Position numbers and translations under genes: made by a program. A stretch of DNA of 64,000 nt from Oculina patagonica. Lineage: Eukaryota. Each line of letters starts with the position of its first letter. The stretch's first letter is position 1. The stretch covers positions 8,370,001 to 8,434,000 of the forward strand of contig NC_135761.1 in NCBI RefSeq assembly GCF_052425735.1, read 5' to 3'. This document shows positions 3,101-53,425 of this stretch, piece by piece. The notes under the pieces are model-generated. The model was not told the DNA's origin. It worked only from the letters and a program-made list of their open reading frames with translations, and did not search any database.

Positions 3101-5395
3101 GGGGCATGTTACATGCGGACATACTTCTACAAAGTAATACCTCTGGTCAAAAATTCACTGGCTCATCCATCGAGCCGCGAAACGCAGCAAGATGGCCATT
3201 TCTCGCCTCTTTTCCTTACAATTCGCGCAAAAACAAGAATTGAAATAGTAAAACTATGTGCTGATTGATAAGTATATTTTGATTTCATTAACAACAACAA
3301 CAATTTTTGAATGAATGAAAAGATTGAGTGTTTTACGATCGACCACGAAAGTGGCAAGTGAGTATCAAAACGTGATTGAAAATGAAGTTTTTTTCATTAT
3401 TCGTAGGGGGAGGGCGGCCTAATTCTTTTAATGGAAGAAGACGGGCGAGGAAATTGTGGGCGAGTGCAATTGAAGGTCACCGCCCGGATGGCGAGTGCTC
3501 CAAAATTTTAGTTTCCAACCCTGTTATGTGAAACCTTGCGAGAGCCGATACTAACCTGAAAACTTTAGCCTATTTTTTTCCCGCGGCTCCTACTCCATCT
3601 CAACATTTTCCAATCTGCCTGTATAAGTGTATGGTCGTTTTTGACCTTACAGTGAACTAGATTCCCACATATGTATTGCAGATATCGCCATAAGCCTATC
3701 TTACCAAACATCGGTTCAGTTACTGTAACTGCCTAAAAATCCCACTGCAGTTTACTTCATTGCATCAATGTCTTTAATAATTGCTGTTTATTTTCTCATA
3801 TTTATTTATTGTCTACTTCTCCTTTTTAGGTAGATACAGGTGCTTCGTGGGCGAATTATAATCCATCTGAAAGAAAAGCAGGAGCGGTTTTCGTTCCAAA
3901 CATTCAAGCTGTGTCCACATCAGTAGGAGGAGTAAAAGTAAGTTTTCTCTATACCGGAAGTTTTAAGGAAATGTGGTATAAGTCATCTCGCGCAAGTTGT
4001 GAAAGTTACCTCCTTTTTCCTCAGGTTCATTTATACCAATAGTGTGAGTCAAAAAGTGGATTAATTAAACGAATCCTAATAAAATCCGTAGCTATAGAAT
4101 TAAAGGAACTTATTTTCATGCGCCTGTTCGAAACCTCTGACGAAGAGAAGCATATAACTCATAGTTTTCAATTTAATCTAAAACTGACCTACTCGCTCTA
4201 GAATAAACTAAGAGAAGTCCCTCCTTTTTTTCTTAGTCCGTCAAGCCTGAAGCGAAAAAAAAGTGCGAATGGAAAAATGGCCGTGGGAAATCTGTAGGGG
4301 ATGACGCGCGTCTTCCTCCCAGATTGTGCGCGATCATTTTTCTGTTCTCGCTCTTTCTCGCTTCACGTTCGACGAACTAAGAAAGAAGAGGGACTGCTTT
4401 TAGTCTAGCTGCTTTTTCTTGTCATGTTCCTCTTCCCCCTTTTTTTGCCCGAAGATGGGTGCATGCACGATGCGGACGGTGAAGTTCATTCCCTTCATTT
4501 CTTCCAATGATTTTCGATAAAGGACTTATTTTCTTTTTTTGTCTATCATGACCCTAGGACGCTGTATTGGTGACAGGCTGGAAGGACATGAAGTTGGTTT
4601 CTCTAAAGGATGGTTCGTTGTTGTCTTCGCATTCGATGCCGTGTGAGCCGCTCTCTCCTGTCGTACACGGAGACTTTACAAATGACGGTTTAATGGACTT
4701 TGTTGTTCAGTGTCAAACAAGGTGAGCTTACTTTTTCAGACATCTTTCGCAATGGCTGCCGCAAGTATTCGCGTTTTCTTATAAATTTTGTGTTCTAACC
4801 AATTATCACGAAGGTGCAATTGTTTTTGCGTGCAAAACCAAACGCATTTTGCCATTTGAAGAATGCCACTTTTCCCGCGCAATCCAAAGATTTTCCTATT
4901 TTCCTATTGGTCACTTGCTTGCTCCTGGCTAATGGTTTCGTATTTCCGCCGCGTTTGCTCTAACCAGTTATCTGTTGCATATTTTCCTGCGCTTGGCAAG
5001 TTTTTGTACATCTTCTATTTTACGTTTATCGTGTTGTCTCGTTCGTTCATGAATGTAGCTGCCTTCTTGAATATTACGGAGTATGAAATCTACGGAGCGG
5101 ACACCTCTACTTAGCGTATGTGTTACGGGCGTAGTTTTGTCCTCTCCCCAGATTTTGCGCGCTTCAATATTTCTCTGCTCGACGATTTACTTCATACAGT
5201 TTTCTGTGTATTAATACCGAAAAAAAGTGAGTAAAAATTTTCTACTCAAAAAATAACTTTTTCTTCAGCTATCTCGGCTTCTCATTGGACAGCAGACCTG
5301 GATACTGGTGGACAGCAGTATGGATCGCGTGTGGTCTGGGTACAATTGTGATTGCTGTTCTGATACTTCGTTGCATTGAAGAAGTGATTGCGTGA
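112..5395 (+). CDS. 3' part of a spliced FG-GAP repeat-containing single-pass membrane protein gene (plant NERD1/At3g51050-like); 5' exons lie upstream of the window
   Basis: Phase-consistent GT-AG exons 112-196, 1146-1262, 1879-2592, 3830-3937, 4558-4721, 5269-5395 (TGA). Motifs EHFSTYAFNSRTG, LPYRWQHPGDT, PNAVVIKRQKSIEVLSL, FG-GAP-type GDVNGDNVIDHV and GDFTNDGLMDFVV, and a C-terminal TM helix WWTAVWIACGLGTIVIAVLIL. Family call from remembered motif similarity. Confidence 0.85.
369..782. mobile_element. Tc1/mariner-type MITE in intron
   Basis: TIR CCGTAAAATTTCGGTTATAAGCCC versus GGGCCTATAACCGGAATTTTATGG, TA on both sides, internal TATAAGCCC repeats. Confidence 0.75.
630..708. mobile_element. 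79-bp MITE with 9-bp TSD, nested in the 369-782 MITE
   Basis: 21-bp perfect TIR CTGACTCGTCCCCAGTCGTCT; TSD CCTCTGCAT at 621-629 and 709-717. Confidence 0.85.
1479..1660. mobile_element. pogo/Tigger-type (Tc1/mariner) MITE
   Basis: TIR CAGTCAACTCTCG / CGAGAGTTGACTG, TA on both sides. Confidence 0.8.
2858..3523. mobile_element. Non-autonomous hAT-like element with 5-bp TSD (hAT5-like)
   Basis: Termini CAGGGTTGGAAA / TTTCCAACCCTG, TTATG on both sides, subterminal CTCGCC/GGCGAG repeats. Confidence 0.75.
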
Positions 5396-5673
5396 CAGGT
5401 CGTGTTTACCTAACAAGTTGCGTGACGGAGCCTTGTCACGGATGTCAGATTTACCAGTTTACGAGCTTGCTCTCAGGCTCTCTCGAAATGGTGTACCTTT
5501 TGACGTGCCCTCTGGGTTCAGCGCTGTGGGTTGTGAAAACTTATCACAAACCCTTGTATTAAGTAGCATTTGCGTGGACAGTATCAGAAAATCTAGCGAT
5601 GGTTCAGTGAGTAGGAAGACATTTTTCCCAAATCTTATCCGTCTTGTGTTCTGGGAAAAGAACTTTTGGAAAG

Positions 5674-5888
5674 CGAGCGAGCGAACAAACGAACGAAAGA
5701 TTGAACGAACGAACGATTGAACGAACGAAAGATTGAACGAACGAACGAACGAACGATTGCACGAACGAACAAACGAACGAACGATTGAACGAACGAACGA
5801 TTGCACGAACGAACAAACGATTGAACGAACGAACAAACGATTGCACGAACGAACAAACGATTGTACGAACGAACGAACGAACGAACGA
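5674..5888. repeat. (GAAC)n-derived compound microsatellite just downstream of the FG-GAP gene
   Basis: Runs of cgaa/gaac interrupted by gattg and acaa; source of the spurious SFVR-repeat ORFs. Confidence 0.9.
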
Positions 5889-7614
5889 TGAATTTGTTGT
5901 AACTTAGAAACGCTGAATTGGCGTAACTTCGGAAAAAATGTGAATATCGCATTAAAAATCGGTTTCATTTATTTTGTATTTATCTAATTCTCTTGTTCCT
6001 ACAAGATGCTTTACAACGCTTAAGTATAATTTTGGCAAATTACTTTCGTTGGTACACAAACTACTGAAGGACACTTCAACAAGGAAATAGAGTTAAGTTT
6101 GACGTTAAAAAAACAGTCCTTTTCGTTTTTCGTAACGTGCACAGGAACAGAAGTGATTTTAATGCTCTGTACATTTTATGCCCTGTATTTTTTTATGCTC
6201 TGTATTAAATTTTTTTCTCGCATTTGAACATCAATCAATTTTAAATAGGAATTTTCGTGTCTTATCGAAGTAAATGTCGTGGCTAAAAATGGTTAACGAC
6301 GCGGCTATTAAAATATTTCATTTCGCAAGAACAGCATTTTAGCGAGAAACAATTTGTTATGCCGCCAAGAATTAAACTCAATTCATAATTAAAAACTTGA
6401 ATGAGAAAGCAAACGCCACTTTGCGACGGTAAAACAGAATTTGAACATCTGAGTAAACAAAATAAATCTTTGTGATGACATCGTCTCAAATAGCTTCGGC
6501 TCTATGCAAACATGTCAGAGCTTTACTTTCGAAAATAATGGCGTCGCTCGTTAAAATCTTGTTACAATTATGAAAATTAAATCGGGGTGCAATAAAGGGA
6601 TTGCCCTCAAAGGTGCGAGCGAAGTTTAATTTCGTTTTCCCGTGTGCTTAGAAAGCGGGCAGCCGTAACTTCGGGGCAGTTATTGTACCAACTTCAAGTT
6701 CAATTGTCAGAATTTTCAATCATTTATTTCACGTGTATTATCAAAGAAAATGTATCGGTGCGGTGGCTGTTTGCATTTTCTATCAGTTTACCGCAAGTTG
6801 GCTTACGTACAAGAACAAAAGAGTCGACAACAGCTCCCAACAAAGACCTGAAAAGAAGCCGTGAATGTACCGACATATAACTCCTTCTGTGTGTTTATTT
6901 AGGCTCTCTTTTACAAAAAAATAATCTTTCCGATCTGAATATTTGTCCTCCGGTAGATTAATCATGCAATAAAGCCATTTGCGGCCTGCTAAGTCCGCGA
7001 ACAAAACATCCGAAAACCGAGTTTGCGAAGAGATGAATAGATCTGAAATTTCGACATCACTTGCTAACTGTCAAAATTGATCTCGACAAATGACGCGAAT
7101 GTATGTTTTGTGAGCGTCCAGTTCTTTCCGTGTATGTAAAATCGAGTTTCCTTTTGAATGCCGCGAAAAAACACGCGGCAACTTTTGCCGCCAACTTGAC
7201 AAAAAGCAAATTTTGTTCGCGAAATTAAAAACTTTTGGTTTCGATTCTTAATTGTCGTTCTTCACCTTTTCCGCCGACAAAAATAAACATTTTGGGAACG
7301 AGCGTTTGTGGAGGCGTTATGCGGCAGCTTCCTGAAAATAAAATTATAATTGCAATTTAAATGCGAACGCACTTGTTTAGCCATACAGTATTTTCTTTCA
7401 GTTGATAATGTCAAAAAAAAAAATTAGATTAAACACATTTAATGGTTTTCGTGTAAAATTTTATTTCTCTCGTATTAAATTACCGAGTTCAACAAGTCGG
7501 ATAAAAATACTAAATTACAAATGTGCTTCGTAGAGAGATTGCTACTTTTTTCGATAAATAACTGATATAAAGAATTCCAACAAAACGTAACTATTTTACT
7601 GTACATGTATCCAA

Positions 7615-9021
7615 TTATTTCAAAGCCATTGCATTTTCAATGAACCGCTTCATATCAACGTCTCTGGCCAAATCTATCGGCAACATGCCACTGTCCGTCT
7701 CGGTAAATAAATCTGCGCCATATTCGATCAATATCGAAGCGGTCACTGCATTTCCCTCGCGTACAGCCTCGTGTAGTGGACTGCTTCCGTTTAAAGACTG
7801 CCTGTTGACTTCTGCCCCATGTTCGAGCAATAGCTTCACACCTTCGGTATCGCCCTTCGCCGCAGCTTCGTGAAGAAGCGAAACGCCAAAACTATTCAAC
7901 CCGTTTACGTTTGTAACTTCTTTGATTACGCTAGCGATGGAAGTTTTCGGTGATCTTAGCATGCAGGCTCGATCATTCGCGTACACAGCAGGGGATGAAT
8001 ATCGGCGCGGTTGAAATTGTTCATCCGATTCTAAGTTGCGGTTTGGCTGGTTTCCGGGATCCGAGTAAATGTTCACAGACGACGCACGTAATCGATCTTG
8101 AAATAAGTTCTCCGCTCTTGAATTGTTGTTTTGCTTGGCTGTCGGTATTGTTCCCCCTCTCTCGAAATTAAGCATATTAGCACCGGAATTCGTCGATGCT
8201 GAACTATACGCCGAATCAGATGAGCTAGACGAATCAGACGAGTTTGAACACAAAGATGATGTCGATTGCCTTTTAAAAACCTCTCGTCGGCGTTTTCCGC
8301 ATTTTGCACAAACTGTTTCTCTGCAACCAGTGGGTAACGCTACACCAGTGAGTCGTGGAATATCCATTAACCTTTCCAGATCTTTATCTCTCGTTTTGAC
8401 AGTTGCGGTCGGAGCTCTTGGGTCGTTAATAACGTCTAAGGAACTGCGCCTTTTCTGGTTTTCAGACCACGAAATATTTGAAGTTAAAATTTCGCTAGTC
8501 GCTCTCTGTCGCTCCTGTACCAACCCGCTCACATCACTCTCTTGTAACTTTTCCTCAATAAGGTCCCTCACTTCAGGCTTTCGGTTAAAATACTCCTCCA
8601 CTTCTTTTGCCCTCCCTCTCCGCCGCATGGCTTCAGCGAGTATTACAACAGATTGTAGATCTCGCGCCAAATCTAAAGCAAGCTCGCCTTGATCGTTCTG
8701 CAAGCCCACCTCAGCACCCATGGTAATGAGATAGCGCATAATCGAGTGATTACGAGCTATCGTAGCAGCGTGCATGACGCTCCATCCTTCTTTATCCTGA
8801 ATATTAAGATCGGCGCCATACGTTACCAACAGTTGCACAAGCTTGAGAGGCCCTGTGAAACAGCACCTTTGGAGGGCTGTAATGCCATCTCCATCGATCT
8901 CGTCGACGTGGAACTGTTTTTCGTTCTGTTCAAGCAGAAATTGCACTCGTAAAATGTCCTTGCCGCTCACGGCTTCGTGAAATAATTCGACCGGCTTCCG
9001 CTTGACTGCAAATTTCAACAT
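7615..9021 (-). CDS. Intronless ankyrin-repeat protein, about 468 aa, with N- and C-terminal ANK clusters (PPP1R27/PPP1R16-like repeats)
   Basis: Long ORF with first ATG at 9021 (MLKFAVKRKP). ANK motifs GITALQRCC, GWSVMHAA, GELALDLA, GVSLLHEAA, GSSPLHEAV, GMLPIDLA flank a Ser-rich linker. Confidence 0.85.
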   Translation of the reverse strand: MLKFAVKRKPVELFHEAVSGKDILRVQFLLEQNEKQFHVDEIDGDGITALQRCCFTGPLKLVQLLVTYGADLNIQDKEGWSVMHAATIARNHSIMRYLITMGAEVGLQNDQGELALDLARDLQSVVILAEAMRRRGRAKEVEEYFNRKPEVRDLIEEKLQESDVSGLVQERQRATSEILTSNISWSENQKRRSSLDVINDPRAPTATVKTRDKDLERLMDIPRLTGVALPTGCRETVCAKCGKRRREVFKRQSTSSLCSNSSDSSSSSDSAYSSASTNSGANMLNFERGGTIPTAKQNNNSRAENLFQDRLRASSVNIYSDPGNQPNRNLESDEQFQPRRYSSPAVYANDRACMLRSPKTSIASVIKEVTNVNGLNSFGVSLLHEAAAKGDTEGVKLLLEHGAEVNRQSLNGSSPLHEAVREGNAVTASILIEYGADLFTETDSGMLPIDLARDVDMKRFIENAMALK

Positions 9022-11595
9022 CGCGACAAAGACCTCCGAAGAAAAACACAGTGTTATGGTGCCGAAGCTATTCTTCGCGAGGTGTAATAAACACACGTCT
9101 GTGTCGCGTCAAGACTTGTTGGTTATGAAAACGGGCCAGGCCAAGAAACAATGGAAATTAGCGCCTTTTGCGCACCAACAATGCACCGGGAAACGAGAAC
9201 ACAAGATTGCCAAAGAAACTGTTATATCAACATGTCTACTTGTATTGTTCCAATTGATTGCTCGCAATGACAGTCAATTGACATAGGTATTATCTGCCCT
9301 TATTGCCCTGTCTCCTGTTGAGATAATTAAATCTTCCTTTGCGGTAGCCGTGGTGAGGAGGTCATGCCTGTTGAATTGTTTTACGAGTGTAACAATTTGT
9401 TTGTCATTACGTTTTGAAATAACTTTAAGAGTGTCTCGGCTTTGTGGCTTTCACGTCATCGTTGAAAACAAACTTTGCGCGATTTCATTTGTTTCACATT
9501 GTTTGCCAAGCTCTCGCACTTTCTCTTTGTTCTTGTTAAGACACTCATCAGGCTTTTTAATTAATGCTTCTAATCTTCAAAAACCGATTATGACATCTAG
9601 CGCGTCTGAGTAAACGCTAAATAGAAAGCTTTTAAATCTACGTGGCAGGTTTTCGTTAAAAAAGAAAAGAAAAAATCCCAAAGTTGGCAGTTTGCGTCGG
9701 TGGGGCTGCCAAAATTAGTAAATAACCAAGGACTTGATAGAAATTTCAATGCTGATTTTCCAGTTGGTTGCTTTTTTAAGTGATCTTGGTATTTATGTAG
9801 GATTATATCAGAATTTCGCAGCATTTTTTTTAGGGATGACTCAACGACATGACGTCGTTTCAGTGATTTTGCACGCCATACCGACCTACGCCGAATAAAA
9901 ACTCCAAGACACGGTACGAGGCGATTGATACAATGTATAGTACGTGACGAAAATTTCAACAGAAGTATTTGCAATATCAAGCAATTATTTTTGTAGAACA
10001 CTGGGTGTTTTGTGGTTTAACCACAACATTGTGGTTATCAGTGAGTCATCGAAGAATAAACGTTCTTTTTAAAAATCTTTTTTTGGCCCTGACTCAACGC
10101 TAATGCAGAGAAATAAATCTTGTTTGTCCCCACGCATACCAAACTACCATATTTCGGTATATGTTGTGACCGTTTCTTTCCTTGGCGATTGATAGCTATA
10201 TTCTTATATATTTATGTTCTCCTGGTTTTTTGTCAGGTTGTTGGGGGAAATTACAAACCGATAAAAAAAAAGCAACATTTCAAGTAAAGCCGGGAGCTCA
10301 GAGCGCACCCTGCTGAACGAAAGAAAGCGCTTTAGAAAACCGACGTGTCTATGTTTTGCTCTGTTTACCACGAATGGAGTGGTTAGTTTATTACTCCGGC
10401 GCGCCATACGGATAGCTATTTCTATGGGCGCGCTGACCCGGAAAAAGTTAGTAACATATCATGTTCACATGTTTTCTTAAACAGATATAAACATCTCGCA
10501 GGCTTCATATCGTGCGAATGTAAACAAAGCGTGTGTTCATGGGTCAATGCATAAAAACAGCTGTGGAAAAACCCTTTAACTCCCCGGAAATGTATTAACA
10601 ACACGCAGGAAATGTCATGAGTGGAAGATTTAAAATTGTCTCAAAGTCATTATGCATGCACTCACGACATTGCATTCCATTCAAGAAAATTATGATGATT
10701 GTTTTGAACTGTCTGTCGATGTCTGATTTTGCAGACGAGCGACTTGAAAGTATGTAGGGGTACTTGAGACTAAGATGAAGTTACAAGTTTCTAGTTCGTT
10801 CTTTATTTGAGGAGATAACGGGGTTTAAGATAGGAAGGAAGATAGCGACCGATAGCAGGATAGCAGCTTTCGTAGAATGTTCTTGTCTTGAACTAAAACG
10901 CACTTCTTTAATAGGTTGAAATGTTTAAAAAAAAAAACAAAGTGGTGTTACTGACCCGTACCTGACTTTAGAATTACTCGTCAGATTAAAGAAAAAAAAA
11001 ACTGCTAATATAACACGACAATATAAACTTCGCCAACGCAAGCCGTTCGTATATCCGACAAAATGTGCTGATTAACAATATTTATGGGGGTCTGTTTATC
11101 TTGTGAAATAGGGATGCTAATCTGGTTAAAAACACGACGTCCCAGAATCGAATCCCGATGATAAGTGGGGTAAATGTCTGGCTTTAATCCTATTATAAGC
11201 TGTTTCAGGCGTATTAGGACTAACAGAGAAGGAGAACAGAAATTTCATAGTGTCGAAGCTTCTAGAGTAGGTCACAAAATGATCCTCTTATCGAGCTGAT
11301 CACGAGAAAACCATGTGTATTCGATGTGTGCCGTGATCAGCAGATATTCAAATATTGTGCACATGTTTGTCATAAAGGCTTAAACTGCCCAATTCATATT
11401 AAATGCCACGCAATGTCCTTTATTTTTTTTTACGGTACTTTATTCATGATGTGTAAGCAATGCTAAAATTCTAATAGACTTGTATCCGTCATCGATAATT
11501 CGCCGAGTAGATGAAGGAAATAAGTGGTTAAAAGTATCCATCTGGTCTTTTCCGTTCGGGTCACTTTTGCCAAATTCCCGGGCGCTTTTGTAAAC

Positions 11596-11876
11596 TTATG
11601 CACCTATCAATGTTAAGCCGCTGGGGGGGGGGGGGGAGGCCGGGCATAGGCGGGGGGTTTGACAGCAAGTATTTGCCCGTAGTGGGGACTTTTGACCGTT
11701 TTACTGGACTTTCTTACAACATTTTATTGAAGTTTTAAAGTGACTCTTTTGAACATCCACACAAGCCCTGGGGTTGGGCATTTAATCAGAAAGTCTAAGC
11801 TAAGTTCAAATGCCTGGCCTATGCCCGGCCTCTTTCCCCCCCCCCCCCCAGCACCTTAACATTGATAAGTGCATAA
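11596..11876. mobile_element. MITE, superfamily unassigned
   Basis: TIR TTATGCACCTATCAATGTTAAG / CTTAACATTGATAAGTGCATAA, extended by poly-G/poly-C and GGCCGGGCATAGG / CCTATGCCCGGCC. No clear TSD. Confidence 0.7.
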
Positions 11877-12255
11877 TATATGCTACTAAGATTTTAAGAA
11901 CCATTACGAAAAGGAAGAGCCATTAAAAATTTAAATCTTACAAGTACTCATATAAAGATTGCTTTATATTGGGACTGGGACCTCAAAGAGCTTCACGTCA
12001 CGATATGTTACAAAATACCCTTAGAACGAAGGAAATCATCAAAATAACAGTTTTCCAAGGTAGAAAATCAACAAAAAACAAACGCGAATAGCTAAGCCGG
12101 ATTTGAGAGATGGCCAGCGATGAACTTGCCACTAGTCGAAACATTTAGCTTGAACGTAAGGCCTGGGCGAGTGCCTAATAGCCGGAAGGACAAACAATTG
12201 TAAGGGACTGAAGAACTTTTACTAGTGGTCTTTCTGCAAAGTAAATTTCTGCTCG

Positions 12256-12478
12256 TAGAAAGAAAGATGTAAATAAATTACAGATGGCTTTCGACACACG
12301 TCTCTGAAATGAAAGAAAAATTGCATGCCCGAGCAGGATTCGAACCCGCGTCTCCCTGTTACTAGTCAGGCGTGATATCCACTACACCACGGGTCACCAC
12401 GCTGGATACGTGGCAACTTATTTTTATATTACATCTTTCTTTCTACGTTTGTAAGGCTTTCTAGGCTTATAAAATTTC
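12256..12478 (-). mobile_element. Short retroelement carrying a tRNA-Thr(AGT)-like pseudogene (12326-12395, - strand)
   Basis: 14-bp TSD TAAATTTCTGCTCG at 12242-12255 and 12479-12492. A box TGGTGTAGTGG, B box GGTTCGAATCC, defective anticodon arm, T-run after it. 19-bp inverted repeat 12254-12272 / 12429-12447. Confidence 0.7.
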
Positions 12479-14542
12479 TAAATTTCTGCTCGGAACCACA
12501 ATTTAAAATAGGAAACCTGGCAGAGATACGAAACCACAGAACATCTCTGAATTTGTCCTTTGTGCCATTTGAATGAAACTGAACACGTGTTGCACTTTGT
12601 ACTCAGTTTTATGTCACCTTCAAGTCCAAAATTCATTTACGTTTTGTCTGCAGATAAACAACTGCCAGTATCCATATTTTATGGATTATGTACAGAAATG
12701 CGTCATTGAGTATTAGATTCTTGTAATTCAGTTTATTTTAATTTACGTGTATTAAATTATTGAATTTAAGGTAATGCAATGTATTTATTTGTTGTTGTTA
12801 TTGTCGTAGTCTTTGCAATCAAGGGACTTCTAAGGAGGCAGTATAGCCAAGGTAGCCAGCAATCTAGGGAGCTAGTTTAAACTGTTTGCAGCGAGCTGTA
12901 CATCATCGACTATCGACTACCCACTTCTCAAATTCAAGTACGGGTCTGGATGGTCAAAATTTAGAATATCAGCTGAAAACTGACGCGTTTTTAACTGATA
13001 GCTGAGTTATCAGATCTGCAAAATTTACTGATAGCCGAGAAATGGGTTGAAATTTTATCAGATAGCTGAGAAATCGCTGAAAATTTAACTGATAAGCGAG
13101 GTTCCAGCACCCCCATGCAGACTGATGGGTCAAGCTCGGACAAGACTGGTGAAATAAATTTGCGGTGCCATTTCTGATCAGAATCTGTTAATGGGATTTT
13201 AGACGGCTAGTCAGAAAAGCCACTTTGGGCTTTAAAGAAAATAACCTGAAAATATTTTTATAAACGCAAGGTCGCAATAAGCCCCCGGATTACCGGGTAG
13301 ATCTATAGAAGTGCCCGGACGTCTGTAAATTCGCGGTGGGCGGGCGAGATAATTCTGGGCGTGCATGCTATTTTATATGAGAAGTAAATGCCTTCTTTTT
13401 TTTTTGGGATTGCTCAACTGTTCGCTGTTCAGTGATAAAAAAACAAATGAAACGTTTGATATTCTATCAAATCAATTGCAAAGAATGTGCATAAAAACCA
13501 TTGCGACGGAATTTCAACACAAAAACCGAGGTCAAAAAAGATGCTTACTTTGGAGTTTTGATACAGATAGGCATCTACATAGCAAAGAATGACAAGAACA
13601 GACGTGGTGTAATGAAAGGAGACCCTTTCCATGCAGACATAAATTTAATTTGCCGTTTTTATATGTAAGACAGAATCTTATAAGGACGCGAGGTCTTTCG
13701 AGTTCAGCTGTAATTGAGCGTTGTTCCTTTAAAAGAGTTGAAACTGAATGAGGAATAAGATAAAGATCCTCGGATAAAAACACCTAATGAGAAATTTCCT
13801 GTGCAATTCTAGCTTGCAATCAGACTTTCACCTCTCATATTAATTCCTTTAACAGGGAATTTCCGGGGTTACTAAATTTATTTCCGTGACATTTAAATCA
13901 AAACGGATAAAAATATTTTTCAAGGCTTTTAAGAAGGGCGGTAAACCGCCCTAAACTTTACTGAACAATGTAATTTATTCCGGCTCCTTTTACTCCAACG
14001 TGCGTTAAGCTGGTTAGTTAAAATACTGTTTCGGACAGGGAAAGGCTGTTCTACGGCAGCTATTAAAAGTTCCCGCAATTACTGATACATTAAAAAACGT
14101 TTCCATAACAGTACATCACTAAACGGAGGTAAATACTTGTTTGAGTGCGTGTGAAGAGAGGTACCTTGAAGTGGAATCATTTTTCAAGGAATTTCAAATA
14201 TTGAATTGTGCAACTGACTTGTTAAGAAGAATTAAGTCTGCGTTGTTATTCAATGTACTTATACTTAAAAAATGCAGCTTCATTCAGCGCCTTTTTTCAC
14301 AAAATCTAAGCGGCAGCCCAGAGAAAACATCACGTGGTAGACTATGAGGCGCTTCGGAGCTCTTAAGGTGTATTGCTGATACTGAATTAGCTTTAATCGG
14401 CTTTCTGAGTCACGCGAAGAAATGAGGAAAGCATTGAGATTAGCTTACGCTGCATTTGAAATTTTCTTTCTGGAAATTGTACTATAAGAACTTCCCAATT
14501 TTAACATATTTCATTTTTCATGCATTGCCCCTCGACTCTTGC

Positions 14543-14582
14543 GACTCGACTCGACTCGACTCGACTCGACTCGACTCGACTC
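14543..14582. repeat. (GACTC)n microsatellite
   Basis: About 8 tandem GACTC units. Confidence 0.9.
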
Positions 14583-14971
14583 TGTCTTGTGATGGTTAGT
14601 CCGGCAGAAATGTCTGGTCGCGCATAAACACCGATTTCAAACGAACGCCTTTTCCACAAATCAGAGTCGAAAAATCGATTTAGGAATTATAAGAAGATCT
14701 TGAATTATCGAGAGGCGTATAGCGATATGGCTTTATTTGGGTAAGGTGGGTGATGCCAATTTAGGGCGTTTTATGAAACTGCAAACAGGCATGTGTCACT
14801 GCTTGAGTGGAATCCACCTTATGATCAGCTATCTTTGTATCTATGCCTATTTAATAGCCCCCCGGGGGGTTTTTTTTTTTTTTGCCCCCCCCCCCTGCGC
14901 CCCCCCCCCCCCCTTAATAGCTAGGGTGGCGACTTCCATAAGCGTATAAAGTGTAAGAGGTACCAGAAACC

Positions 14972-15428
14972 CAGCCTGCGTATTGAGCTGGTGATTTCGT
15001 TAGCGCAAAACGTAGACTGCAAAACAGTCGTTTTTTCTTTGAAGTCGTTGAAAAATAATTCTAAAGTCGTTGAAAAAAGCGCTTATCAAAGGCGCGAAGC
15101 GCCGAACATTGGAACATTGAGGCGCGAAGCACCGATCGTCTCGCGAGCCTCTCCCCAGTCTCACTCACAGTTTTGACATTGGATCCAGACCTCTCGCTCT
15201 CGTACTAAGACCGAGCGCATTCACAAAAAGTACGAGTGTTTTTCAGTCTACGCAAAACGAGGCAAGCACGAGGCCACGAGGGGTGAAGCCGCGAGAGGAA
15301 CACTCCCGCCATCCTATTCCCCTTGCCTGCTCGCGGCTTTTCTCTCCTTCAAGGCATTTCCCTCCACCGCCCGTTTCTGTCTCTACTCGTTTAATTTGCG
15401 CCAACGAAACGACCAACTTCGCAGACTT
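14972..15428. mobile_element. Older MITE (14972-15428) containing a younger TAG-terminated MITE (15013-15250) with 9-bp TSD
   Basis: Inner element TAGACTGCAAAAC...GTTTTTCAGTCTA with CGCAAAACG on both sides. Outer element has degenerate TIRs and a partial CCAGAA TSD. Confidence 0.7.
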
Positions 15429-15704
15429 CCAGAATTCTGATTTACAGCGTACATGCAGGGTTGGCTGAAATTCGTTTTTACGCCTAAGAGGTATCCGTTC
15501 CATTACAAGGCATGCTGAACTGAAGGACATCAAAATGCGCTCTTTAAACCCTAAACTGAAAGTTCCACTTTACTGAATGTTTCCTGCTATTTTCGCCATA
15601 CTAGACTGAATTCAGTTCTTACATTGCAAACAAATTACAAAAGTGGCCTAAACTGCGGATAGTGTTCATGTAAGAAGACGGAAAGATTAGATCACGTTTT
15701 TAAA

Positions 15705-18700
15705 CTAAAATCCCGAATCATAAATACTCTTGATGTGTCTTGAGTATTTTGTAGGCGCCGTCAGCCAGTTGTTAGCGATCCATTTCTCTCCATTAATGAC
15801 GTCACATCCGCCGTGAAGCGAGTAGCGGTCCACGGATCCTAAAAGACCGCTGTCCGGGTCGATAAAGTTGTTGTACCACATGATGGCGGTGCCTTTCTTG
15901 GGAGGGACAACAAGATTTGCCAGTTGACAGTTTACGCTCAAGTTGAATTCGTCTGTTGTAGCGTTGGGGCTTTCCAGCTCCTGTGTGAACAAGAATTTTG
16001 TTAAACCTGATTTAGGAATTCAAGTTCTCCTAGCTAGAGTGGTTTCACTTGGGTGTCGAAAGTAATTCACGTTTTGCATTACCAACCTCTCAGTGCGATC
16101 AGTTTAAAAAACTCGCCCTAAACTTTCTCAACCAGTCACAAGCAAAACCATTAAGGTCTCCGCACACGTGGGGACAAGAAGGGGTCATGCCGCAGCGACA
16201 TTAAGCAGCGACAAAACATTGTGTTGTTCACACTGAGGGGACATGTAACAGGGACTTGTATCGGGGACATGTAGCAGCAACAAGAACACAATATGTACAC
16301 ATGCAAGAAAATGTAGCGGGGAAATATGTCGCAGCGACACGTCTCCCTCTTGTGTAGAACCTCATTCCTAGGAACAAAATGTGGCAGGAATTCGTGTTTT
16401 CAGGCATGAGCCAAACACAATCAGTACACACAAGGGGGACGTGTCGCTGTGACATGTCCATAGGTCATGTTCCCGCTACATTTCCTTGAGTGTGTACATA
16501 TTGTGATTTTGTTGCTGCTACATGTTCCCGATACACTCCCTGCTTTATGTCCCTTCAGTGTGACCAACACATGATTTTGTCGCTGCTACATGTCGCTGCG
16601 GTATGTCCTTGCGTCTTGTCCCCACGTGTGCAGAGAGCATGGAGACCTTTACTCACTCAAAAAAATCGCTTTCACACGTTTTCCTGCGCTTCGCGCCGGT
16701 TACATGTACAGTTTTTGCTTTGAGTTTGATTGGCTCACTGGATTGTCTGTGTCCTTTGGGATTGGCCAGACTGATTATGCTATTTTTGGCCTGAATGAGT
16801 CTGTGAACTAACTGTGGCTAAAACACTAAACTGAGTAGGTTTTGTTTAAAATATGTCATATGATAGCTCTAGAAAACAGAGGTTTCTTGTCGCGCTTTCA
16901 TTTCCATCAACCGTGAGAGTTGAGTAAGATTGAATTGAGGCGAAAAATTCCTGATGCCTTTGAGCACTGAAATTGGTGTTAGTTATAATCCAGCAACAGT
17001 CATGCAGTTAGACACTTAAGTCGCCTTACAGATCTCTGTATTGCAACGTCTTTAGTGTGAAGTGTTTTGTCAAGGTGATATTTGTTCGCCGGTTTACAAA
17101 TGGCGCACTCGAACTTGTGCGTTAAATCAATAAACTTACTCACCTCTGGTGTGATTGTGGTGTTGTCTGCTATCAGGAAGGCTGTCTCTCCTCCTTCTTC
17201 AACGTCGTTAAGGTAATACAGTATCGTTACAAATCTGTAAATAAAATATTTTGCCAGTTCAAATTGAAGTACTTGTGAATATGGTTGAAAAAACCCCCTC
17301 CAATTTTGGCGATTCACCACCAATATAGAATATAGTAAACGTTTGTTTGTATTGACCAGTTTTTGTTTGTTTGTGCTGTTTCTGGTTTGACTTCGCAATA
17401 GCTAGCTAGCTTTATTTTTTCTTGGAAACTAAAGGAGTTGTTGACAGTCTGTCCCTGATTGAATACAACGGTCGCGTCAAGAAAAAGCGCACATTCACTT
17501 TGTCCCTCCTGTAGGGTTTAAGCTCCGTGTGGATCGTATTTACCTCCATCAATTTTACTTCGTTCATGAAAAATGAATTTGGAATTATTACTGATGGAAT
17601 ATTGCAAAAATTGAAAGCTAATATATATAAGGTTAAGCGCGCGTTCATATATAGTCTGCATGGAATTCTTATAGTAACATAGAAATCTCTAAAGAAATTT
17701 CGTGTGACTGTGTAGCGCATATAACTAGTGAATTGAAAACGATAATTAAAATGAAAAATGCGCTTGATGGAAGTATAATGTTTCCATACGTTTCGGGGCT
17801 ACTGCCCCTTCTTCAGTGGAAAATGTGAATGCCATCTTCAGACACAGGCGGCCCAAGCTCACAATTAGAGGAGTTAAAATATTTAACATAATCTCTTTTG
17901 TAACCGTATGCGAAACGTGACTCTCGACCGGCAGCATATGGAGGTGTTGTGTTACAACGGTTCTCATTTATAAAGGTTTGTATGGGAGAATACGCTTTCG
18001 AATTTATAGCTAAATATAATGAGATTTTGACAATAAAATCAACTTACCTCAATGTCCTGTCGTTATGTCTGTTGTTATCTCGGTTCTCAGGCCGATCCGA
18101 GGCGTTTTAAGCGAGTTATGCAATTTTTGGTTTCCACTGCTAAGAAGAAGTAGCAGTAGACAGGACATTGAGGTAAGTTGATTTTATTGTCAAAATCTCA
18201 TTATATTTAGCTATAAATTCGAAAGCGTATTCTCCCATACAAACCCTTATAAATGAGAACCGTTGTAACACAACACCTCCATATGCTGCCGGTCGAGAGT
18301 CACGTTTCGCATACGGTTACAAAAGAGAATTATGTTAAATATTTTAACTCCTCTAATTGTGAGCTTGGGCCGCCTGTGCTTCAGATAGCAGATGGAATTC
18401 TTATCCCTGGCATTTGCTCACGTCCTGCTTGTGCCGTAATCTCGTTTCCAGAGTCTGTGCGTTTTCCGGTCAGCGGTGACCAAACGCCCAACGGGCAACG
18501 GGTCTGGGCGATTCAAACCAGGAATTCTTGCTCCGGTTTGATTTGGCCGTATTTTGGTGGGCTTTTCAGTCTAGTCCAGAGTTCTCGATTCTTAGTGCTG
18601 ACCAAAAGGATCGCGGACTCTGGGGACGCGATTGCTGGTGCCGCTACGTTTTGCATGCGCATACGTGGATGAGTTAAATCAGTACCTGCACACCCGACAT

Positions 18701-20832
18701 TCGGGCTTCTGAAAGTGATTCTGGTGACAGCAAGGAATTGTGGGTTTTTCAAAAGGGTTGGAGTCCAGATGGCCGTGGTAATGCCCAAACTGGTCATATT
18801 GAACAACCTGCAAAACACATCACATTTCATCATAATTCTCATCATATCGCATCCTAGGTCTTGTAACGGTTGATACCATAAAATAATTTTATACATGATA
18901 AAAACTTCCGTTTTGCATTGTCAAACGGTCCGGCATGCAGCGAGAATACACTTAAGGGTGGTTACCAGTTAGGAGAAATACTATTTTGATCTTAGTTGCA
19001 GAATAGCTCATTCACTACTAAAGCTTGTATTGCGATGATTTAAAAATTAGCAGGTTAGCGTTATCGACGAGAGTCTTTAGAAAGTTTTTTGTCCTACCTG
19101 CATCCACTCGCTTCCTTGAATCAGTTTTCTCGGCAACTGAGTCAACCTGGTGATTCTGCAGCAAAAGCGATAGAGATTAGATTGGAATCAGCATAGTACC
19201 GTTTATGCGAGCGTTTCCTTTTTGGTCACTTTCATTTTGGCGCAAATATGATGATGTCACTGAATAACCTCCCCAGGCCCTAACTTGCATTTCGCGTTTG
19301 TCTGCGAGACAAAGGCATCGCCTAGGGATTTGGATTCAAATACCGTTTGCAGACTAAGTTTTCACCTCACGTTACTAGTTGCAGTCTTTTAAAAAAAAAC
19401 CAACAGTTCAAGTTCTCGCGCCATGGCTACTTAGTTCCGTTAGTCAACGCCATTTTGGATTTACGTAGGCAAATTTAAATATTCCAGGCTGCCGTTTTCA
19501 AGATTTACACCCACTTTCAGTGTAAACGTGCGTAACTTTCTTTCTACATCCATCGTTCAACATCATCTTCGACATTGTCTTTCGACGTGCTGTTTAAAAT
19601 GAGCCAATCAAAATCAATACATACCGGTGTTGGTCTTACCATACAGCGGTCAAACGCAGCGCGCGTGCGCAGTTTCTGTGTAATTCCCGCCAAAATTTTC
19701 CATACAAAGTCTTAAATTTTCCGATAACTTTCGCTTTAAAGCCAAAAGTTAACGCCGTCCCTGGAAAGTTAAGGTTTATACGCCGCTTATGGATTGGAAA
19801 TTTGATAATTCATCTTCACTGAGTGTCCCAGCTTGAACTGTTCTTTCACCGTACTATTTCTTTAACAATTTCTTACAAAAGTTTGCCCACTTTCAAGTCG
19901 AAAGTTCGAGGCGGCGAAGACCGGATGTGACGTCAATTTTTGCGTTTGACCGCTGTGTGTGGTCTTACCCACACAGCGGTCAAACGCAAAAATGACGTCA
20001 CCTCCGGTTTTCGGCGCCTCGAACTTTTCTGAGAATTTGTCTCGAAAGTGTGCAAACTTTTGTATGAAATTGTTAAAGAAATGGTACGGTGAAAGAACAG
20101 TTCAAGCTGGGACACTCAGTGGAGATGAATTATCAAATTTCCAATCCATAAGCGGCGTATAAACCTTAACTTTCCAGGGACGGCGTTAACTTTTGGCTTT
20201 AAAGCGAAAGTTTTCGGAAAATTTAAGACTTTGTATGGAAAATTTTTGGCGGCAATTACACATGAACTGCGCACGCGCGCTGCGTTTGACCGCTGTGTGG
20301 GTCTTACCTTTCGAGTAGGCGTCTTAAAATTGGGTCAGCGTTCTTGTCCTGTCGTAACCAGGCCTGCTGGCTGTACCGGGGCCTGTGGCGAGGACTTTTT
20401 TCTTTCAAGAAATCCATGTACCACAGGATCTTTTTTATGTTGATTTTAGCAAATGCTTCACGACTTAGTTTACCTGTACGATGGATCATAGGAAGAAAGG
20501 TGAATAATAGTTTGAGAAATCAGTTACAGACCTTTATCGCTAAGGGGCTACAGTTTTTATGGTGCATTTCAAAAAAGTCTACATTTTTGGAATCTGTTTT
20601 GTTTATTTATTATATACTCAGTAACTTGTTTAAAAAAATGTTTTTTTTTGCTTACCATCTTGGAGATTTTCAGATAATTCCAGACGCTGAAACCTTAATC
20701 AAAAGCAAAACATACATTATGGTCAATTTACGCTATGGGTGTTAAAAAGAAAGAACAAAACATTCCGTTAACAATATTATGATCTCAACTCCGCCCTCCC
20801 CCAAAAATATTCATTTGGTGTTGTTAGTGATC

Positions 20833-20879
<47 letters not shown>

Positions 20880-23800
20880 AAGGAGGAGGAAAAGGAGGAG
20901 GATTATAAAGAAATAAAATTGCGAGAATGAGCAATCCCCGCCCATCCACACCGCCGCCAAACGGTAGATTGGCGGAGAAGGAGGCAAGTTGTATCTTACT
21001 CACTTTGCATTTTTCCCATGCAACTTTTTTTTAGTCCCCGTATTTTTATGATCCAATTTTTCCTACGGTCTGAGGGGATTTAACATACTTTGATATTGGA
21101 CGATGTTTTTCTTAGCTAAGTAGTACTCACATTCCGGGAACTTCATCCTCCCTCATGAATAGAAGTTTGCGTTTTTGGGCGAAGTGTCTCACCTGAAAAT
21201 AAAGCAATCACACAGGAGTAAACACAAAGAAATCTGGAAGATATGAAAATAGCTAAAAGCCTTATTTTTCGCATGCCAAGCACATGAATGTATTTTGTGT
21301 TTTATATACGTACCTCATTTGCGTCGATAAATCCATCATTATTGACATCCCAAACGAAAAATCCTTTAGCGAATCGCTCATCGTGATCCAGCGTCCAGTT
21401 TCCATCTATAATCAAGTTTAAATAGTAAACATTAAGCTACTTACTCAATTCGGAACTCTGTACCAGAAAGAGTAAAGCGTTTTGTTGAGCCTACTTGCTC
21501 AACATAATTATCTCCCATTTTCGTTGCATCTCGGGCAAATTAAGGCATGGGTCAACAGTTACTTCCCTCAAAAAAAGTGAGGGGGTGGTCTAACTTCTAA
21601 GGCGTTGTTCATTACAACATAAAATTGTAGTTGACAGATGAGTCTCCAACAGTGATGATTTTTTGACATGTCGAAGTTATGCAAATTAGGTCACGTGACT
21701 TAATACGCTAAATAATCGTAGAAAATCTTTAAGCGAAATTGGGAACAGTTTATAGCAAGAGAAATTCAATTTGAATGGTACAAGACAAGTCCTAATAGTA
21801 ACAGCAAGGAAACTGTGCTTGGCAATTATTGAATATTTGATTGATTTTGGAAATAAACAGCTTTTTATACTAGTACCCAGTCTCCCAGTAAAAGTGTTCT
21901 GTCTTTTGTAACGTTTCCTTTGAAATATTTTAACATTTCCAAGCACAGAAACAATGTACCTAATCGCCTTAAAGTTAAAAAACTGACAGCAATTTTAAGG
22001 AAGCAGGAAAAAGTGTTCCCGTTTTACGTAAGGTTTTTTTTGCGCCTTAAGAGGTCACGTGACCTAATTTGCATATTTTAGACATGCTAAAATGAAAACA
22101 ATTGATAATCCATGGTTCTGGGAAAGTTTCATGCTGCTACAACTAAAGCTTCAAGAGAAAGACTACCCCCTCACTTTCTGGGCGAATATCGAGAGGCCCA
22201 TGCCTTAATTTGCTTGAGATGAAGCAACCCTGGTTATCCACAATATGGTTGTCCTTTGAAGCCTAGACCACTAAAAGTCCCTTAGGGTTTTTCTCATGCA
22301 GAGTCAGTCAAGTGAGCGAACGAGCGAGCGACTGCTCGTAGTCTAATTGTAGCCTAATTTTAATCGCACTCCGGCTCCTCACTCTATATTTTTCCTTATT
22401 GTAGCTGCACCTTTCCCCACCCCCGTTCCCGAATTTTGTCGGGGCTACCCTGATAATTCGCGCGTGCTCATTAATATCCAGTCCTGCCGGAGTGGATAGA
22501 AGCACTGTGAGACTAAAGCGTCCCGGTCTGGCCGGCCAAGGACACAACGTAAAAACCCTAGACGTCAAGATGACGGAGGTATAAATGACAACTGTCAGAC
22601 AAGACTCGAGTCGCTGTTGTCATTATTATTTATGAAAAAGCACGTTAATTAGCTCAAAAACGTTTTTACCGGCTTCTCTCATGTCCTCGTCCAAGTCCCC
22701 TTCATACGCGGCTACATCAAAGCCCGCTATACTCATGGCGAGACCGCTTTCCTTTGCCAGTGAAATGACATGCTCACACTCCTCATCAGACAAGAATCGG
22801 GGAATTTCTGTTTTAAAGAAATATCAATTTTGAGTCAAAATTAAAAAAAATTAAAAAAGGACGAATTTGTTTTGTCACAATATAGGACATTTCTTGTCCT
22901 TTCAGATTTTAACTCATGTTATCAAAACATGAAGAAGGCTTTTTAAAGTACAAATATTTGAGTATTCAGAACACTAACACTCATAATAAACAAGCAAAAC
23001 AATTAAGCAAAGAAACAGAGACAATTGTTGAACTGGGTTTTTTGCCTAAGGATACGTTTCTTTTTAAAAAAAAAGATATAAAAAAATTCCAGGTAAAGGG
23101 TATGCGTTTAAACAAATAATTGATGCTTTTTATCAATGCATCTCACCAAATAGCAGAGGCTTCATGGCTCTAGTGATCATCTGATATTTTCTCCCTTCCT
23201 CCAATTCCACCCATCTCACGTGACCAGTCTATAAATAAATAATACCACGAGATCACAAGTTGAAATAGCGTTCTTCTGGTTGTTGCTCAGACGTGCGTGT
23301 GTGTCTTATGTGCGATCATTGCGTACTTGTTAGCAAAAAATTAATTAGATTTTTTATCCCAAAGACTTAGTCATCTAGTTAGTTACAATTATTCCCCGCA
23401 GTGGAGGCAGCTAGTGATGCCATGTCGCCATCTTCTCTCTTCTTCTTCCCATACTACCTTTCGGTCTCGTCGCGTGAACTTTTGTGCTTTTTTTCCGGCA
23501 ACGTTTTTTGAATTAGCTGTATATGAATCAAATCATGCACGCACCGAAAAACGTGATTAAAAAGATAGTTATCAAAGCCTCATAGTGGCTAGGTTAGTGT
23601 CAACATATCGGTAACCAAAATTGATTGCGAATGAAATTAAAAGTGTGTTGGTACAAAGATTACAACATTCAATCACGAAAACTTCTTAATGGTCTAAAAT
23701 GCATTTCGATTTTAATAATTAAGCTTAGAACAATTTACGAAATGAAATAGAGAAAAGAGGCTTTCGAACAGTAGTATTAAGTACATTTTTATCTTTACAT

Positions 23801-44954: not shown

Positions 44955-45097
44955 NNNNNNNNNNNNNNNNNNNNNNNNNNNNNNNNNNNNNNNNNNNNNN
45001 NNNNNNNNNNNNNNNNNNNNNNNNNNNNNNNNNNNNNNNNNNNNNNNNNNNNNNNNNNNNNNNNNNNNNNNNNNNNNNNNNNNNNNNNNNNNNNNNN
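44955..45097. other. Assembly gap (143 N)
   Basis: Run of n. Confidence 1.
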
Positions 45098-53296: not shown

Positions 53297-53425
53297 NNNN
53301 NNNNNNNNNNNNNNNNNNNNNNNNNNNNNNNNNNNNNNNNNNNNNNNNNNNNNNNNNNNNNNNNNNNNNNNNNNNNNNNNNNNNNNNNNNNNNNNNNNNN
53401 NNNNNNNNNNNNNNNNNNNNNNNNN
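53297..53425. other. Assembly gap (129 N) at the position paralogous to tRNA-Glu
   Basis: Both flanks match those of the 47598-47669 tRNA. Confidence 0.95.

Follow-up and report, generated by a model that had tools for sequence, protein, structure and literature searches.

Introduction

P-element dimers in Drosophila arise by double insertion: one target-site duplication (TSD) lies between the two elements, and sites that come close to the target consensus are favoured. Inverted tandems have been reported as well (McGurk & Barbash 2018, PMC5932611). A locus in the coral Oculina patagonica resembles the P-element and hobo dimers in that two cut-and-paste copies are separated by a TSD copy, and in that a site near a palindromic consensus is favoured, the site of one copy (copy B) standing at the 99th percentile (PMC5932611). 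It differs from them in that its copies are inverted and offset by 1 nt, the spacer is of 10 nt and so not exactly one TSD, the elements are MITEs, the target is a splice donor and the host is a coral.

The second arrangement that this locus brings to mind is the intronic inverted repeat. Duplexes of this kind are the main ADAR substrates across Metazoa, and a profile of editing across Holozoa names Acropora millepora (PMC9989829). Like inverted Alu pairs (IRAlus), the coral locus holds short-repeat copies in opposite orientation within one intron, with a predicted duplex of ~320 bp. Alu pairs typically have spacers of hundreds of nucleotides, whereas here the spacer measures 10 nt, the duplex lies 8 nt from a splice donor and is known from a predicted fold, and the spliced RNA looks normal.

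As to the kind of transposon involved, Mutator-like elements (MULEs) have TSDs of 9-11 bp and a MURA-type DDE transposase, Merlin elements have TSDs of 8-9 bp and an IS1016-like transposase, and piggyBac-like transposons have TTAA targets. The family at this locus shares with the MITEs of MULEs and Merlin a fixed 9-bp TSD, a weak palindromic target and short, non-coding elements; it differs from them in that its TIRs are of just 19 nt and in that no autonomous partner with shared TIRs was present among 71 loci. The coral MITEs already described include the CMITEs of Acropora, which are reported to be linked to piggyBac-like transposons and to form tandem arrays (Wang et al. 2010, PMC2872659). 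Both families are coral MITEs capable of multi-copy arrangements, but the present one has 9-bp TSDs of variable sequence, none of them TTAA, and is therefore a family distinct from the piggyBac-related CMITE (PMC2872659).

The locus thus described unites two phenomena already known, the double insertion at one site and the inverted pair of transposable elements within an intron; it is a tidy example and presents no new mechanism. It is a clean and datable double insertion of a DNA transposon in a cnidarian, with the empty site kept in two sister species.

Sequence and data sources

The window is the whole stretch of DNA analysed, 64,000 nucleotides of the O. patagonica genome (assembly GCF_052425735.1, contig NC_135761.1, positions 8,370,001 to 8,434,000 of the forward strand), and all coordinates below count from its first letter. 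It contains two N runs, at 44955-45097 and 53297-53425, and none within the region analysed. Contigs of four public runs were placed on 18600-20700: X1 from organism A, X4 from organism B, X10 from organism D, and X30, an RNA run of organism A, the species of the window.

Copies of the family were collected by scanning public metagenome contigs for the TIR, which gave 71 loci, nearly all from coral samples. After removal of duplicates and of one GC-rich bacterial chance match (L067), which was rejected as a family member and left out of the statistics, 76-77 element ends at 64 independent sites were retained. A scan of viral contigs for the TIR gave 0 matches.

Layout of the element pair

Positions 19631-20308 of the window hold two copies of one MITE family, 95.3% identical and in opposite orientation, each flanked by its own perfect 9-bp TSD (Table 1). 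The 19-nt TIR CAYACAGCGGTCAAACGCA has exactly four matches in the 64 kb, against 0 expected, and these are the four element ends. For GGTCTTACC the window has three matches where 0.25 would be expected, and all three border an element. The two TSDs are offset by 1 nt, and the three TSD copies are all direct although the elements themselves are inverted relative to each other, so that the region reads ...GGTGT TGGTCTTAC (copy A) TGGTCTTAC C (copy B, inverted) GGTCTTACC TTTCGAG... Aligned with the reverse complement of copy B, copy A shows 15 substitutions (7 transitions and 8 transversions) and three indels of 1, 10 and 1 nt. Both copies contain only short, stop-riddled frames. The coordinates, TSDs, opposite orientation and 1-nt offset given in a first-pass annotation of this DNA all proved exact on recomputation.

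Table 1. Positions of the element pair, its target-site duplications and the surrounding features of the host gene in the window. A slash marks an exon-intron boundary.
Feature	Positions	Strand	Details
Following exon	18686-18807	-	encodes VVQYDQFGHYHGHLDSNP..., with the Fe(II)-binding HxD motif; donor /gtactg
Next exon	19098-19155	-	58 nt; encodes (R)ITRLTQLPRKLIQGSEWMQ; acceptor ctgcag/, donor /gtagga
Host intron	19156-20307	-	1152 nt; 484 nt without the 668 nt from the two insertions
Older unrelated high-copy repeat	19523-19634	.	left flank of the pair; occupies the ancestral intron from +6 onward
Left TSD of copy A	19631-19639	.	TGGTCTTAC; on the minus strand decoy donor 2 (G at 19640, then GTAAGACC)
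MITE copy A	19640-19959	+	320 bp; TIRs CATACAGCGGTCAAACGCA and CACACAGCGGTCAAACGCA; without 10 bp present in copy B
Spacer	19960-19969	.	TGGTCTTACC, 10 nt; TSD of A overlapping TSD of B; hairpin loop; decoy donor 1
Right TSD of copy A	19960-19968		TGGTCTTAC
Left TSD of copy B	19961-19969		GGTCTTACC
MITE copy B	19970-20299	-	330 bp; inverted relative to copy A; both TIRs CACACAGCGGTCAAACGCA
Right TSD of copy B	20300-20308	.	GGTCTTACC; on the minus strand last exon base (20308) and intron +1 to +8, the authentic donor G/GTAAGACC
P4H-TM exon upstream of the pair	20308-20473	-	encodes ...RYSQQAWLRQDKNADPILRRLLE; 5' end 20469-20473 (4-nt alignment ambiguity); donor /gtaaga

Two successive 9-bp-staggered insertions, 1 nt apart, would account for every base of this layout. 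The annotation had already proposed that one family inserted here twice, independently, and this is supported by the 9-bp TSD proper to each copy and by the direct orientation of all TSD copies. We consider it about three in four probable that the pair is a double insertion in this sense: within the lineage leading to the sequenced coral, two distinct members of a single MITE family with 9-bp TSDs entered the same short target successively. The separateness of the events, and likewise their order, would follow from the logic of the TSDs.

A single event would also yield a pair of this length. In one form, a preformed A-spacer-B foldback would have inserted with an 8-bp TSD, GGTCTTAC, and its arithmetic fits (320 + 10 + 330 + 8 = 668); two introns away, moreover, at 17843-18378, lies a true foldback element whose TSD measures 7 bp. 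The internal 10-nt spacer, however, is identical to the local target, and a composite brought from elsewhere would not carry such a sequence. In another form, fold-back duplication during repair would have made the second arm from the first, but it would leave an inverted TSD, whereas all three copies here are direct. An assembly foldback error, the third form, has to contend with the substitutions and indels that separate the arms and with the independent contigs described in the next section. With these points taken together, an origin in a single event or an artefact is barely credible.

The empty site in related species

Contigs of two related species preserve the site without either element. 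In organism B (X4) a contig joint, 19631>20300, skips 668 nt, with 9 letters that fit both sides, at a depth of 92 where the flanks have 91-111. The same 19631>20300 joint, again skipping 668 nt, is found in organism D (X10) at a depth of 52 against 47 in the flanks. In both, the joint is the predicted empty site ...GTGTT-GGTCTTACC-TTTCGAG, and the flanks of these two organisms are ~1-4% different from the window.

In the window's own species the situation is the reverse. The contigs of X1 contain no empty-site joint, and a 532-nt contig of this run passes from 24 nt inside the TIR of copy B through the TSD into the exon (20276-20700) with 0 differences; among the pieces listed for X1, it is the right junction only that is crossed. 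A search for empty and single-insert alleles had been suggested by the annotation, and its two parts fared differently: the exact empty site is there in two related species, and the contigs of the four runs include no single-insert allele.

Since the empty site is kept in two related species, the pair is a lineage-specific double insertion, both elements having arrived after the split from organisms B and D, and is no foldback artefact. An assembly foldback error is ruled out for practical purposes by the empty site, by the independent X1 assembly across the right junction and by the 5% divergence of the arms.

The MITE family and its target

Among the metagenome loci, paired TIR ends were found in 30 elements, and the length of the family's elements ranges from 237 to 580 bp. 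Both ends together with a matching 9-bp TSD were present at 12 of the 64 sites. Eight of the 30 pairs have no TSD and look like repeat-chimeric assemblies (in L013 and L052, for example, one flank only is shared), and because such pairs appear to be chimeric across the repeat, ends were scored singly. Words of the family occur at ~450-1,800x single-copy depth, a measure of abundance and not an exact copy number.

With its TIRs, a fixed 9-bp TSD, an empty site, small size, non-coding content and many copies, the family is a bona fide MITE family. The TSD is 9 bp throughout the window copies and the two-ended metagenome copies, a length that fits both MULEs and Merlin, and by TSD length alone the superfamily is probably Mutator-like or Merlin-like. 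No transposase ORF adjoins a TIR in the 71 loci, whose contigs are short. Among the loci with an interior unlike the MITE, considered as autonomous partners, L040 proved to be a MITE copy inside a Ty3/gypsy-like pol, and the others contain no transposase. A CRE-like TGACGTCA beside one TIR was likewise rejected as a feature of the family, being present at only 4 of 81 ends (those of A, B, L005 and L006 only).

The target logo, built from metagenome contigs of various corals that include chimeric joins through the repeat, is weak and palindromic: GSYNNNRSC. Position 1 is G in 35 of 77 ends and position 9 is C in 33 of 77; S at position 2, Y at position 3 and R at position 7 complete the preferences listed, with per-position p values from 1e-7 to 3e-4, and positions 4-6 are unconstrained. 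It is a first target-site logo for an undescribed coral MITE family with a 9-bp TSD.

Scored against this logo, the two targets at the locus are far apart. Among all 9-mers of the window GGTCTTACC ranks at the 98.9th percentile, and the donor reads GGT-N3-ACC on both strands. For real insertion sites the leave-one-out median is the 89th percentile, and 12% of them fall in the top 1%. TGGTCTTAC, the target of copy A, ranks no higher than the 33rd percentile, a score as poor as those of the lowest ~5% of real sites; consensus alone therefore fails to explain one of the two insertions.

Splice donors as supposed targets

The annotation had supposed that the family prefers targets resembling splice donors. 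In its full form this reading holds that the family recognises 5' splice-site-like G/GTRAG and that the insertions are tolerated since the TSD regenerates the donor. Two observations speak for it. AGGT/ACCT is overrepresented at TSD positions 7-10, with 13 of 77 ends against 4.6 expected (2.8-fold; p = 6e-4 before correction for six motifs), and GTAAGAC lies at the edge of the TSD in one further locus (L035/L057). The donor motif itself shows no such excess: GTRAG is found at 2 of 77 ends, both from one locus, where 2.35 are expected, GTAAG at 2 ends against 1.25, and GGTRAG at 0 of 77 against 0.37. The logo is moreover palindromic, with positions 4-6 free where a donor requires RAG, and annotated donors make up, by our own estimate, only a small share of all AGGT sites. 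AGGT/ACCT and GGTA/TACC (10 ends against 4.1 expected) are the sole enriched words, and they are the edges of the target logo.

The supposed preference is accordingly not borne out by the other copies, whose lack of donor enrichment is what the annotation itself had named as grounds for refuting it, and recognition of donors as such is highly improbable. The family has no splice-donor preference; this donor simply fits the weak palindromic logo. Without donor homing, the locus says nothing about the evolution of introns and splice sites beyond the trivial observation that a donor is preserved when the TSD spans it.

Proposed origin of the second insertion

Under the double insertion proposed above, a transposase with a weak preference for GSYNNNRSC would meet a near-optimal target in the donor G/GTAAGACC, the first insertion would duplicate that target, and a second element, from another source copy, would enter the same motif again with its cut displaced by 1 nt and its orientation reversed. 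Both would then act as ordinary intronic insertions starting at +9. Their arms could pair into a ~320-bp stem that would loop out almost exactly the added 668 nt, with the authentic donor still in use and the intron removed. For the order of the two events, and for target preference and not proximity as what lay behind the second, we infer that this course is the one that was followed.

That the two copies came from different sources is supported by the letters in which they differ. At 19895 and 19900 the letters of copy A, which are not those of copy B, occur in X1, X4 and X10 alike at depths of ~6,000-19,000, which make up 15-22% of the depth of the whole family, thousands as compared with a single-copy depth of ~45-110. 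Since these variants are present in two species that have no copy A, the differences predate the insertion. At least two of the A/B differences are thus old subfamily variants, and copy A is not simply a hop or a copy of copy B. The nearest metagenome copies are L006 (88%) and L005 (80%), and their alignment shows alternative states at A/B differences in other copies. Polarising the differences with L005 and L006 gives three 'conflict' sites, where ~0.7 would be expected by coincidence, which is weak when taken alone.

Proximity could nevertheless have set the site of the second insertion. The second copy would then have been drawn by the first, through the hop of a linked or sister-chromatid copy or through transposase that was bound to the resident TIRs and captured the DNA beside them, and the 9-mer would not have decided the site. 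The low score of copy A's target is in keeping with this, as is the small number of double insertions expected from target preference alone, ~0.01-0.1 per genome (a rough figure that assumes 1,000-3,000 copies and 0.4-0.5 Gb and uses the measured 12-fold top-site preference); with so low an expectation, some attraction to a resident copy may have been at work, although a single rare event of this sort is unsurprising where many windows are read. Other contigs also carry two family-like copies close together, 8 nt apart in X1 (depth 55) and ~22 nt apart in X10 (depth 64), and in L025 two copies lie 128 bp apart. Copies A and B, furthermore, share 95% identity and have at most 88% to any metagenome copy. 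The metagenome copies come from other corals, however, so that the closeness of A and B is weak evidence, and the contigs concerned are short. The old variants weigh against such a hop, being common to many copies, including those of species without the insertion, so that neither copy was copied from the other. Local hopping, which the annotation had offered as an alternative, is weakened by them and keeps its place as a rival reading, though an unlikely one.

The preferred reading remains that of two members of the family drawn successively to one target. A wider proposition would make reinsertion next to or into the TSD of an existing copy a regular property of the transposase, one that would repeatedly create near-perfect intronic palindromes, some of them at AG/GT junctions because the target logo overlaps that core; in corals, ADAR or Dicer might act on such palindromes, or the palindromes might modulate splicing. 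This is a long shot.

Host gene, predicted hairpin and splicing

The host gene, on the minus strand, is a prolyl 4-hydroxylase orthologous to P4H-TM. Its last exon matches human P4H-TM (6tp5) with E = 6.5e-17, as compared with 1e-6 for other P4Hs, the exon with the HxD motif aligns to residues 233-263 of 6tp5 (E = 7e-4), and an EF-hand-like exon lies at about 21305-21436. In the three-exon region around the pair the acceptors are cag/, and the three exons joined make a single open frame that includes ...AWLRQDKNADPILRRLLE-R-ITRLTQLPRKLIQGSEWMQ-VVQYDQFGHYHGHLD... A PDB search with the exon adjoining the pair gave no match; this exon is assigned on the open spliced frame, the 6tp5 matches of its neighbours and an RNA contig.

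On the minus strand this exon ends at 20308 as ...CGAAAG/GTAAGACC, and the pair begins 8 nt inside the intron. The donor is intact next to the exon because the 9-bp duplication spans the last exon base and intron +1 to +8; the annotation was right that the real donor survives as the outermost TSD copy. It had also placed the target at the donor on the sense strand of the gene, with two extra donor copies about 340 and 670 nt into the intron, and these are the decoy G/GTAAGACC sites at 19969 and 19640, 339 and 668 nt downstream of the real donor.

Folding of the minus-strand RNA of 19600-20330 predicts one long stem of -550.3 kcal/mol (z = -46) that starts 8 nt after the splice site, in agreement with the ~320-bp double-stranded stem that had been proposed. 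In the predicted fold the loop is where decoy 1 lies, and 8 nt separate the real donor from the base of the stem. Look-alikes of Rfam microRNA precursors at the hairpin tip score 21-37 bits against gathering thresholds of 52-97 and were set aside as generic hairpin matches.

RNA from the same species bears on which donor is used. A 505-nt contig of X30 with a depth of 26.3 lies on 20308-20469 with 0 differences, and the piece ends exactly at 20308. The same depth value recurs over 19098-19155 and 18747-18807, and the three lengths (162 + 58 + 61 = 281) correspond to positions 225-505 of the record. RNA depth is 21.9 in the bin of the 19098-19155 exon and falls to 0 over unique intron sequence (bins 18813-19096 and 19168-19522). 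Splicing therefore proceeds from the authentic donor and takes out the enlarged intron; the joint between the exons is deduced from the depth and length of the contig. Altered splicing, which the annotation had considered as a consequence of the pair, is not seen in these RNA data.

A transcript that continues beyond the donor encounters TAA at intron +2 to +4; products of the decoy donors would therefore carry a premature stop, and they would probably be degraded. The modelled hairpin may restore the effective length of the intron and so keep the insertion neutral for splicing. The RNA contigs that align to the arms have 6-12 mismatches to the window per 100 letters and so derive from other copies.

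The locus illustrates that target preference together with target duplication can put a 660-bp near-palindrome 8 nt from a working donor with the gene not disabled. Should the hairpin prove to be edited or diced, it would offer a convenient natural substrate for the study of long intronic dsRNA in corals.

The older repeat beside the pair

The left flank of the pair belongs to a repeat unrelated to the MITE family. Word depth jumps from ~46 to >20,000 at 19523, where this older repeat starts. In all four runs the loose contig ends at 19634 have one common continuation (agreement 0.81-0.99), which is unlike the window. The same repeat is also found in species that have the empty site.

Repeat-Derived DNA at the Left Flank of the Pair

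The DNA that borders the inverted MITE pair on its left is a high-copy repeat, with a word depth about 500 times that of single-copy sequence in the run contigs of all three species, and it contains ATTGG (CCAAT) motifs. Beyond 19634, other copies of this repeat carry on with a common sequence that differs from the window. Since the left flank is a repeat whose other copies run on past this point, everything in the ancestral P4H-TM intron beginning at position +6, read on the gene strand, derived from a repeat. This arrangement places three TE-related boundaries within 9 nt of the splice donor beside the pair.

In X1, the DNA run of organism A, which carries the pair, a second contig of 151 nt covers 19447-19597 with 7 differences and a depth of 19, alongside a window-identical contig at a depth of 38. 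This second contig may represent either another haplotype or a paralogous copy of a repeat.

Coordinates of the repeat, palindromes and foldback element in the window
Feature	Position	Location or basis
High-copy repeat	19523-19634	Left flank of the MITE pair; word depth of run contigs
Perfect CRE-like palindrome TGACGTCA	19922-19929 and 19994-20001	Also in metagenome loci L005 and L006
Foldback element, separate from the MITE pair	17843-18378	Downstream P4H-TM intron

Close-Set Copies and a Palindrome within the MITE Family

Closely spaced copies also occur elsewhere. At other loci, family-like copies occur in head-to-tail pairs at single-copy depth, with a gap between the two members of about 8 nt in X1 and of about 22 nt in X10, the run of organism D, a related coral with an empty site; they were seen as X1 and X10 contigs aligned at window positions 19957>19659 and 19959>19643. 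These pairs in organisms A and D could be further double insertions. Among the coral-metagenome contigs holding the family's TIR, L025 carries two copies with 128 bp between them (340-1023), and L040 bears one copy within a Ty3/gypsy-like pol region (2000-5800), together with a duplication of the flank plus TIR, 149 bp apart.

The CRE-like palindrome sits about 5 nt inward of one TIR and was found in 4 of 81 ends, exclusively in copies A and B of the pair and in their two nearest relatives.

Other Elements in Introns of the P4H-TM Gene

The foldback element and the MITE pair belong to different families. The arms of the former comprise 220 nt in total, are 99-100% complementary and enclose a loop of 97 nt, while its ends read CACAGGCGGCCC... 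and are bordered by a 7-bp TSD, CTTCAGA. At 20816-20890, in the upstream P4H-TM intron, there is a (TGA)n microsatellite in which the unit recurs about 25 times.
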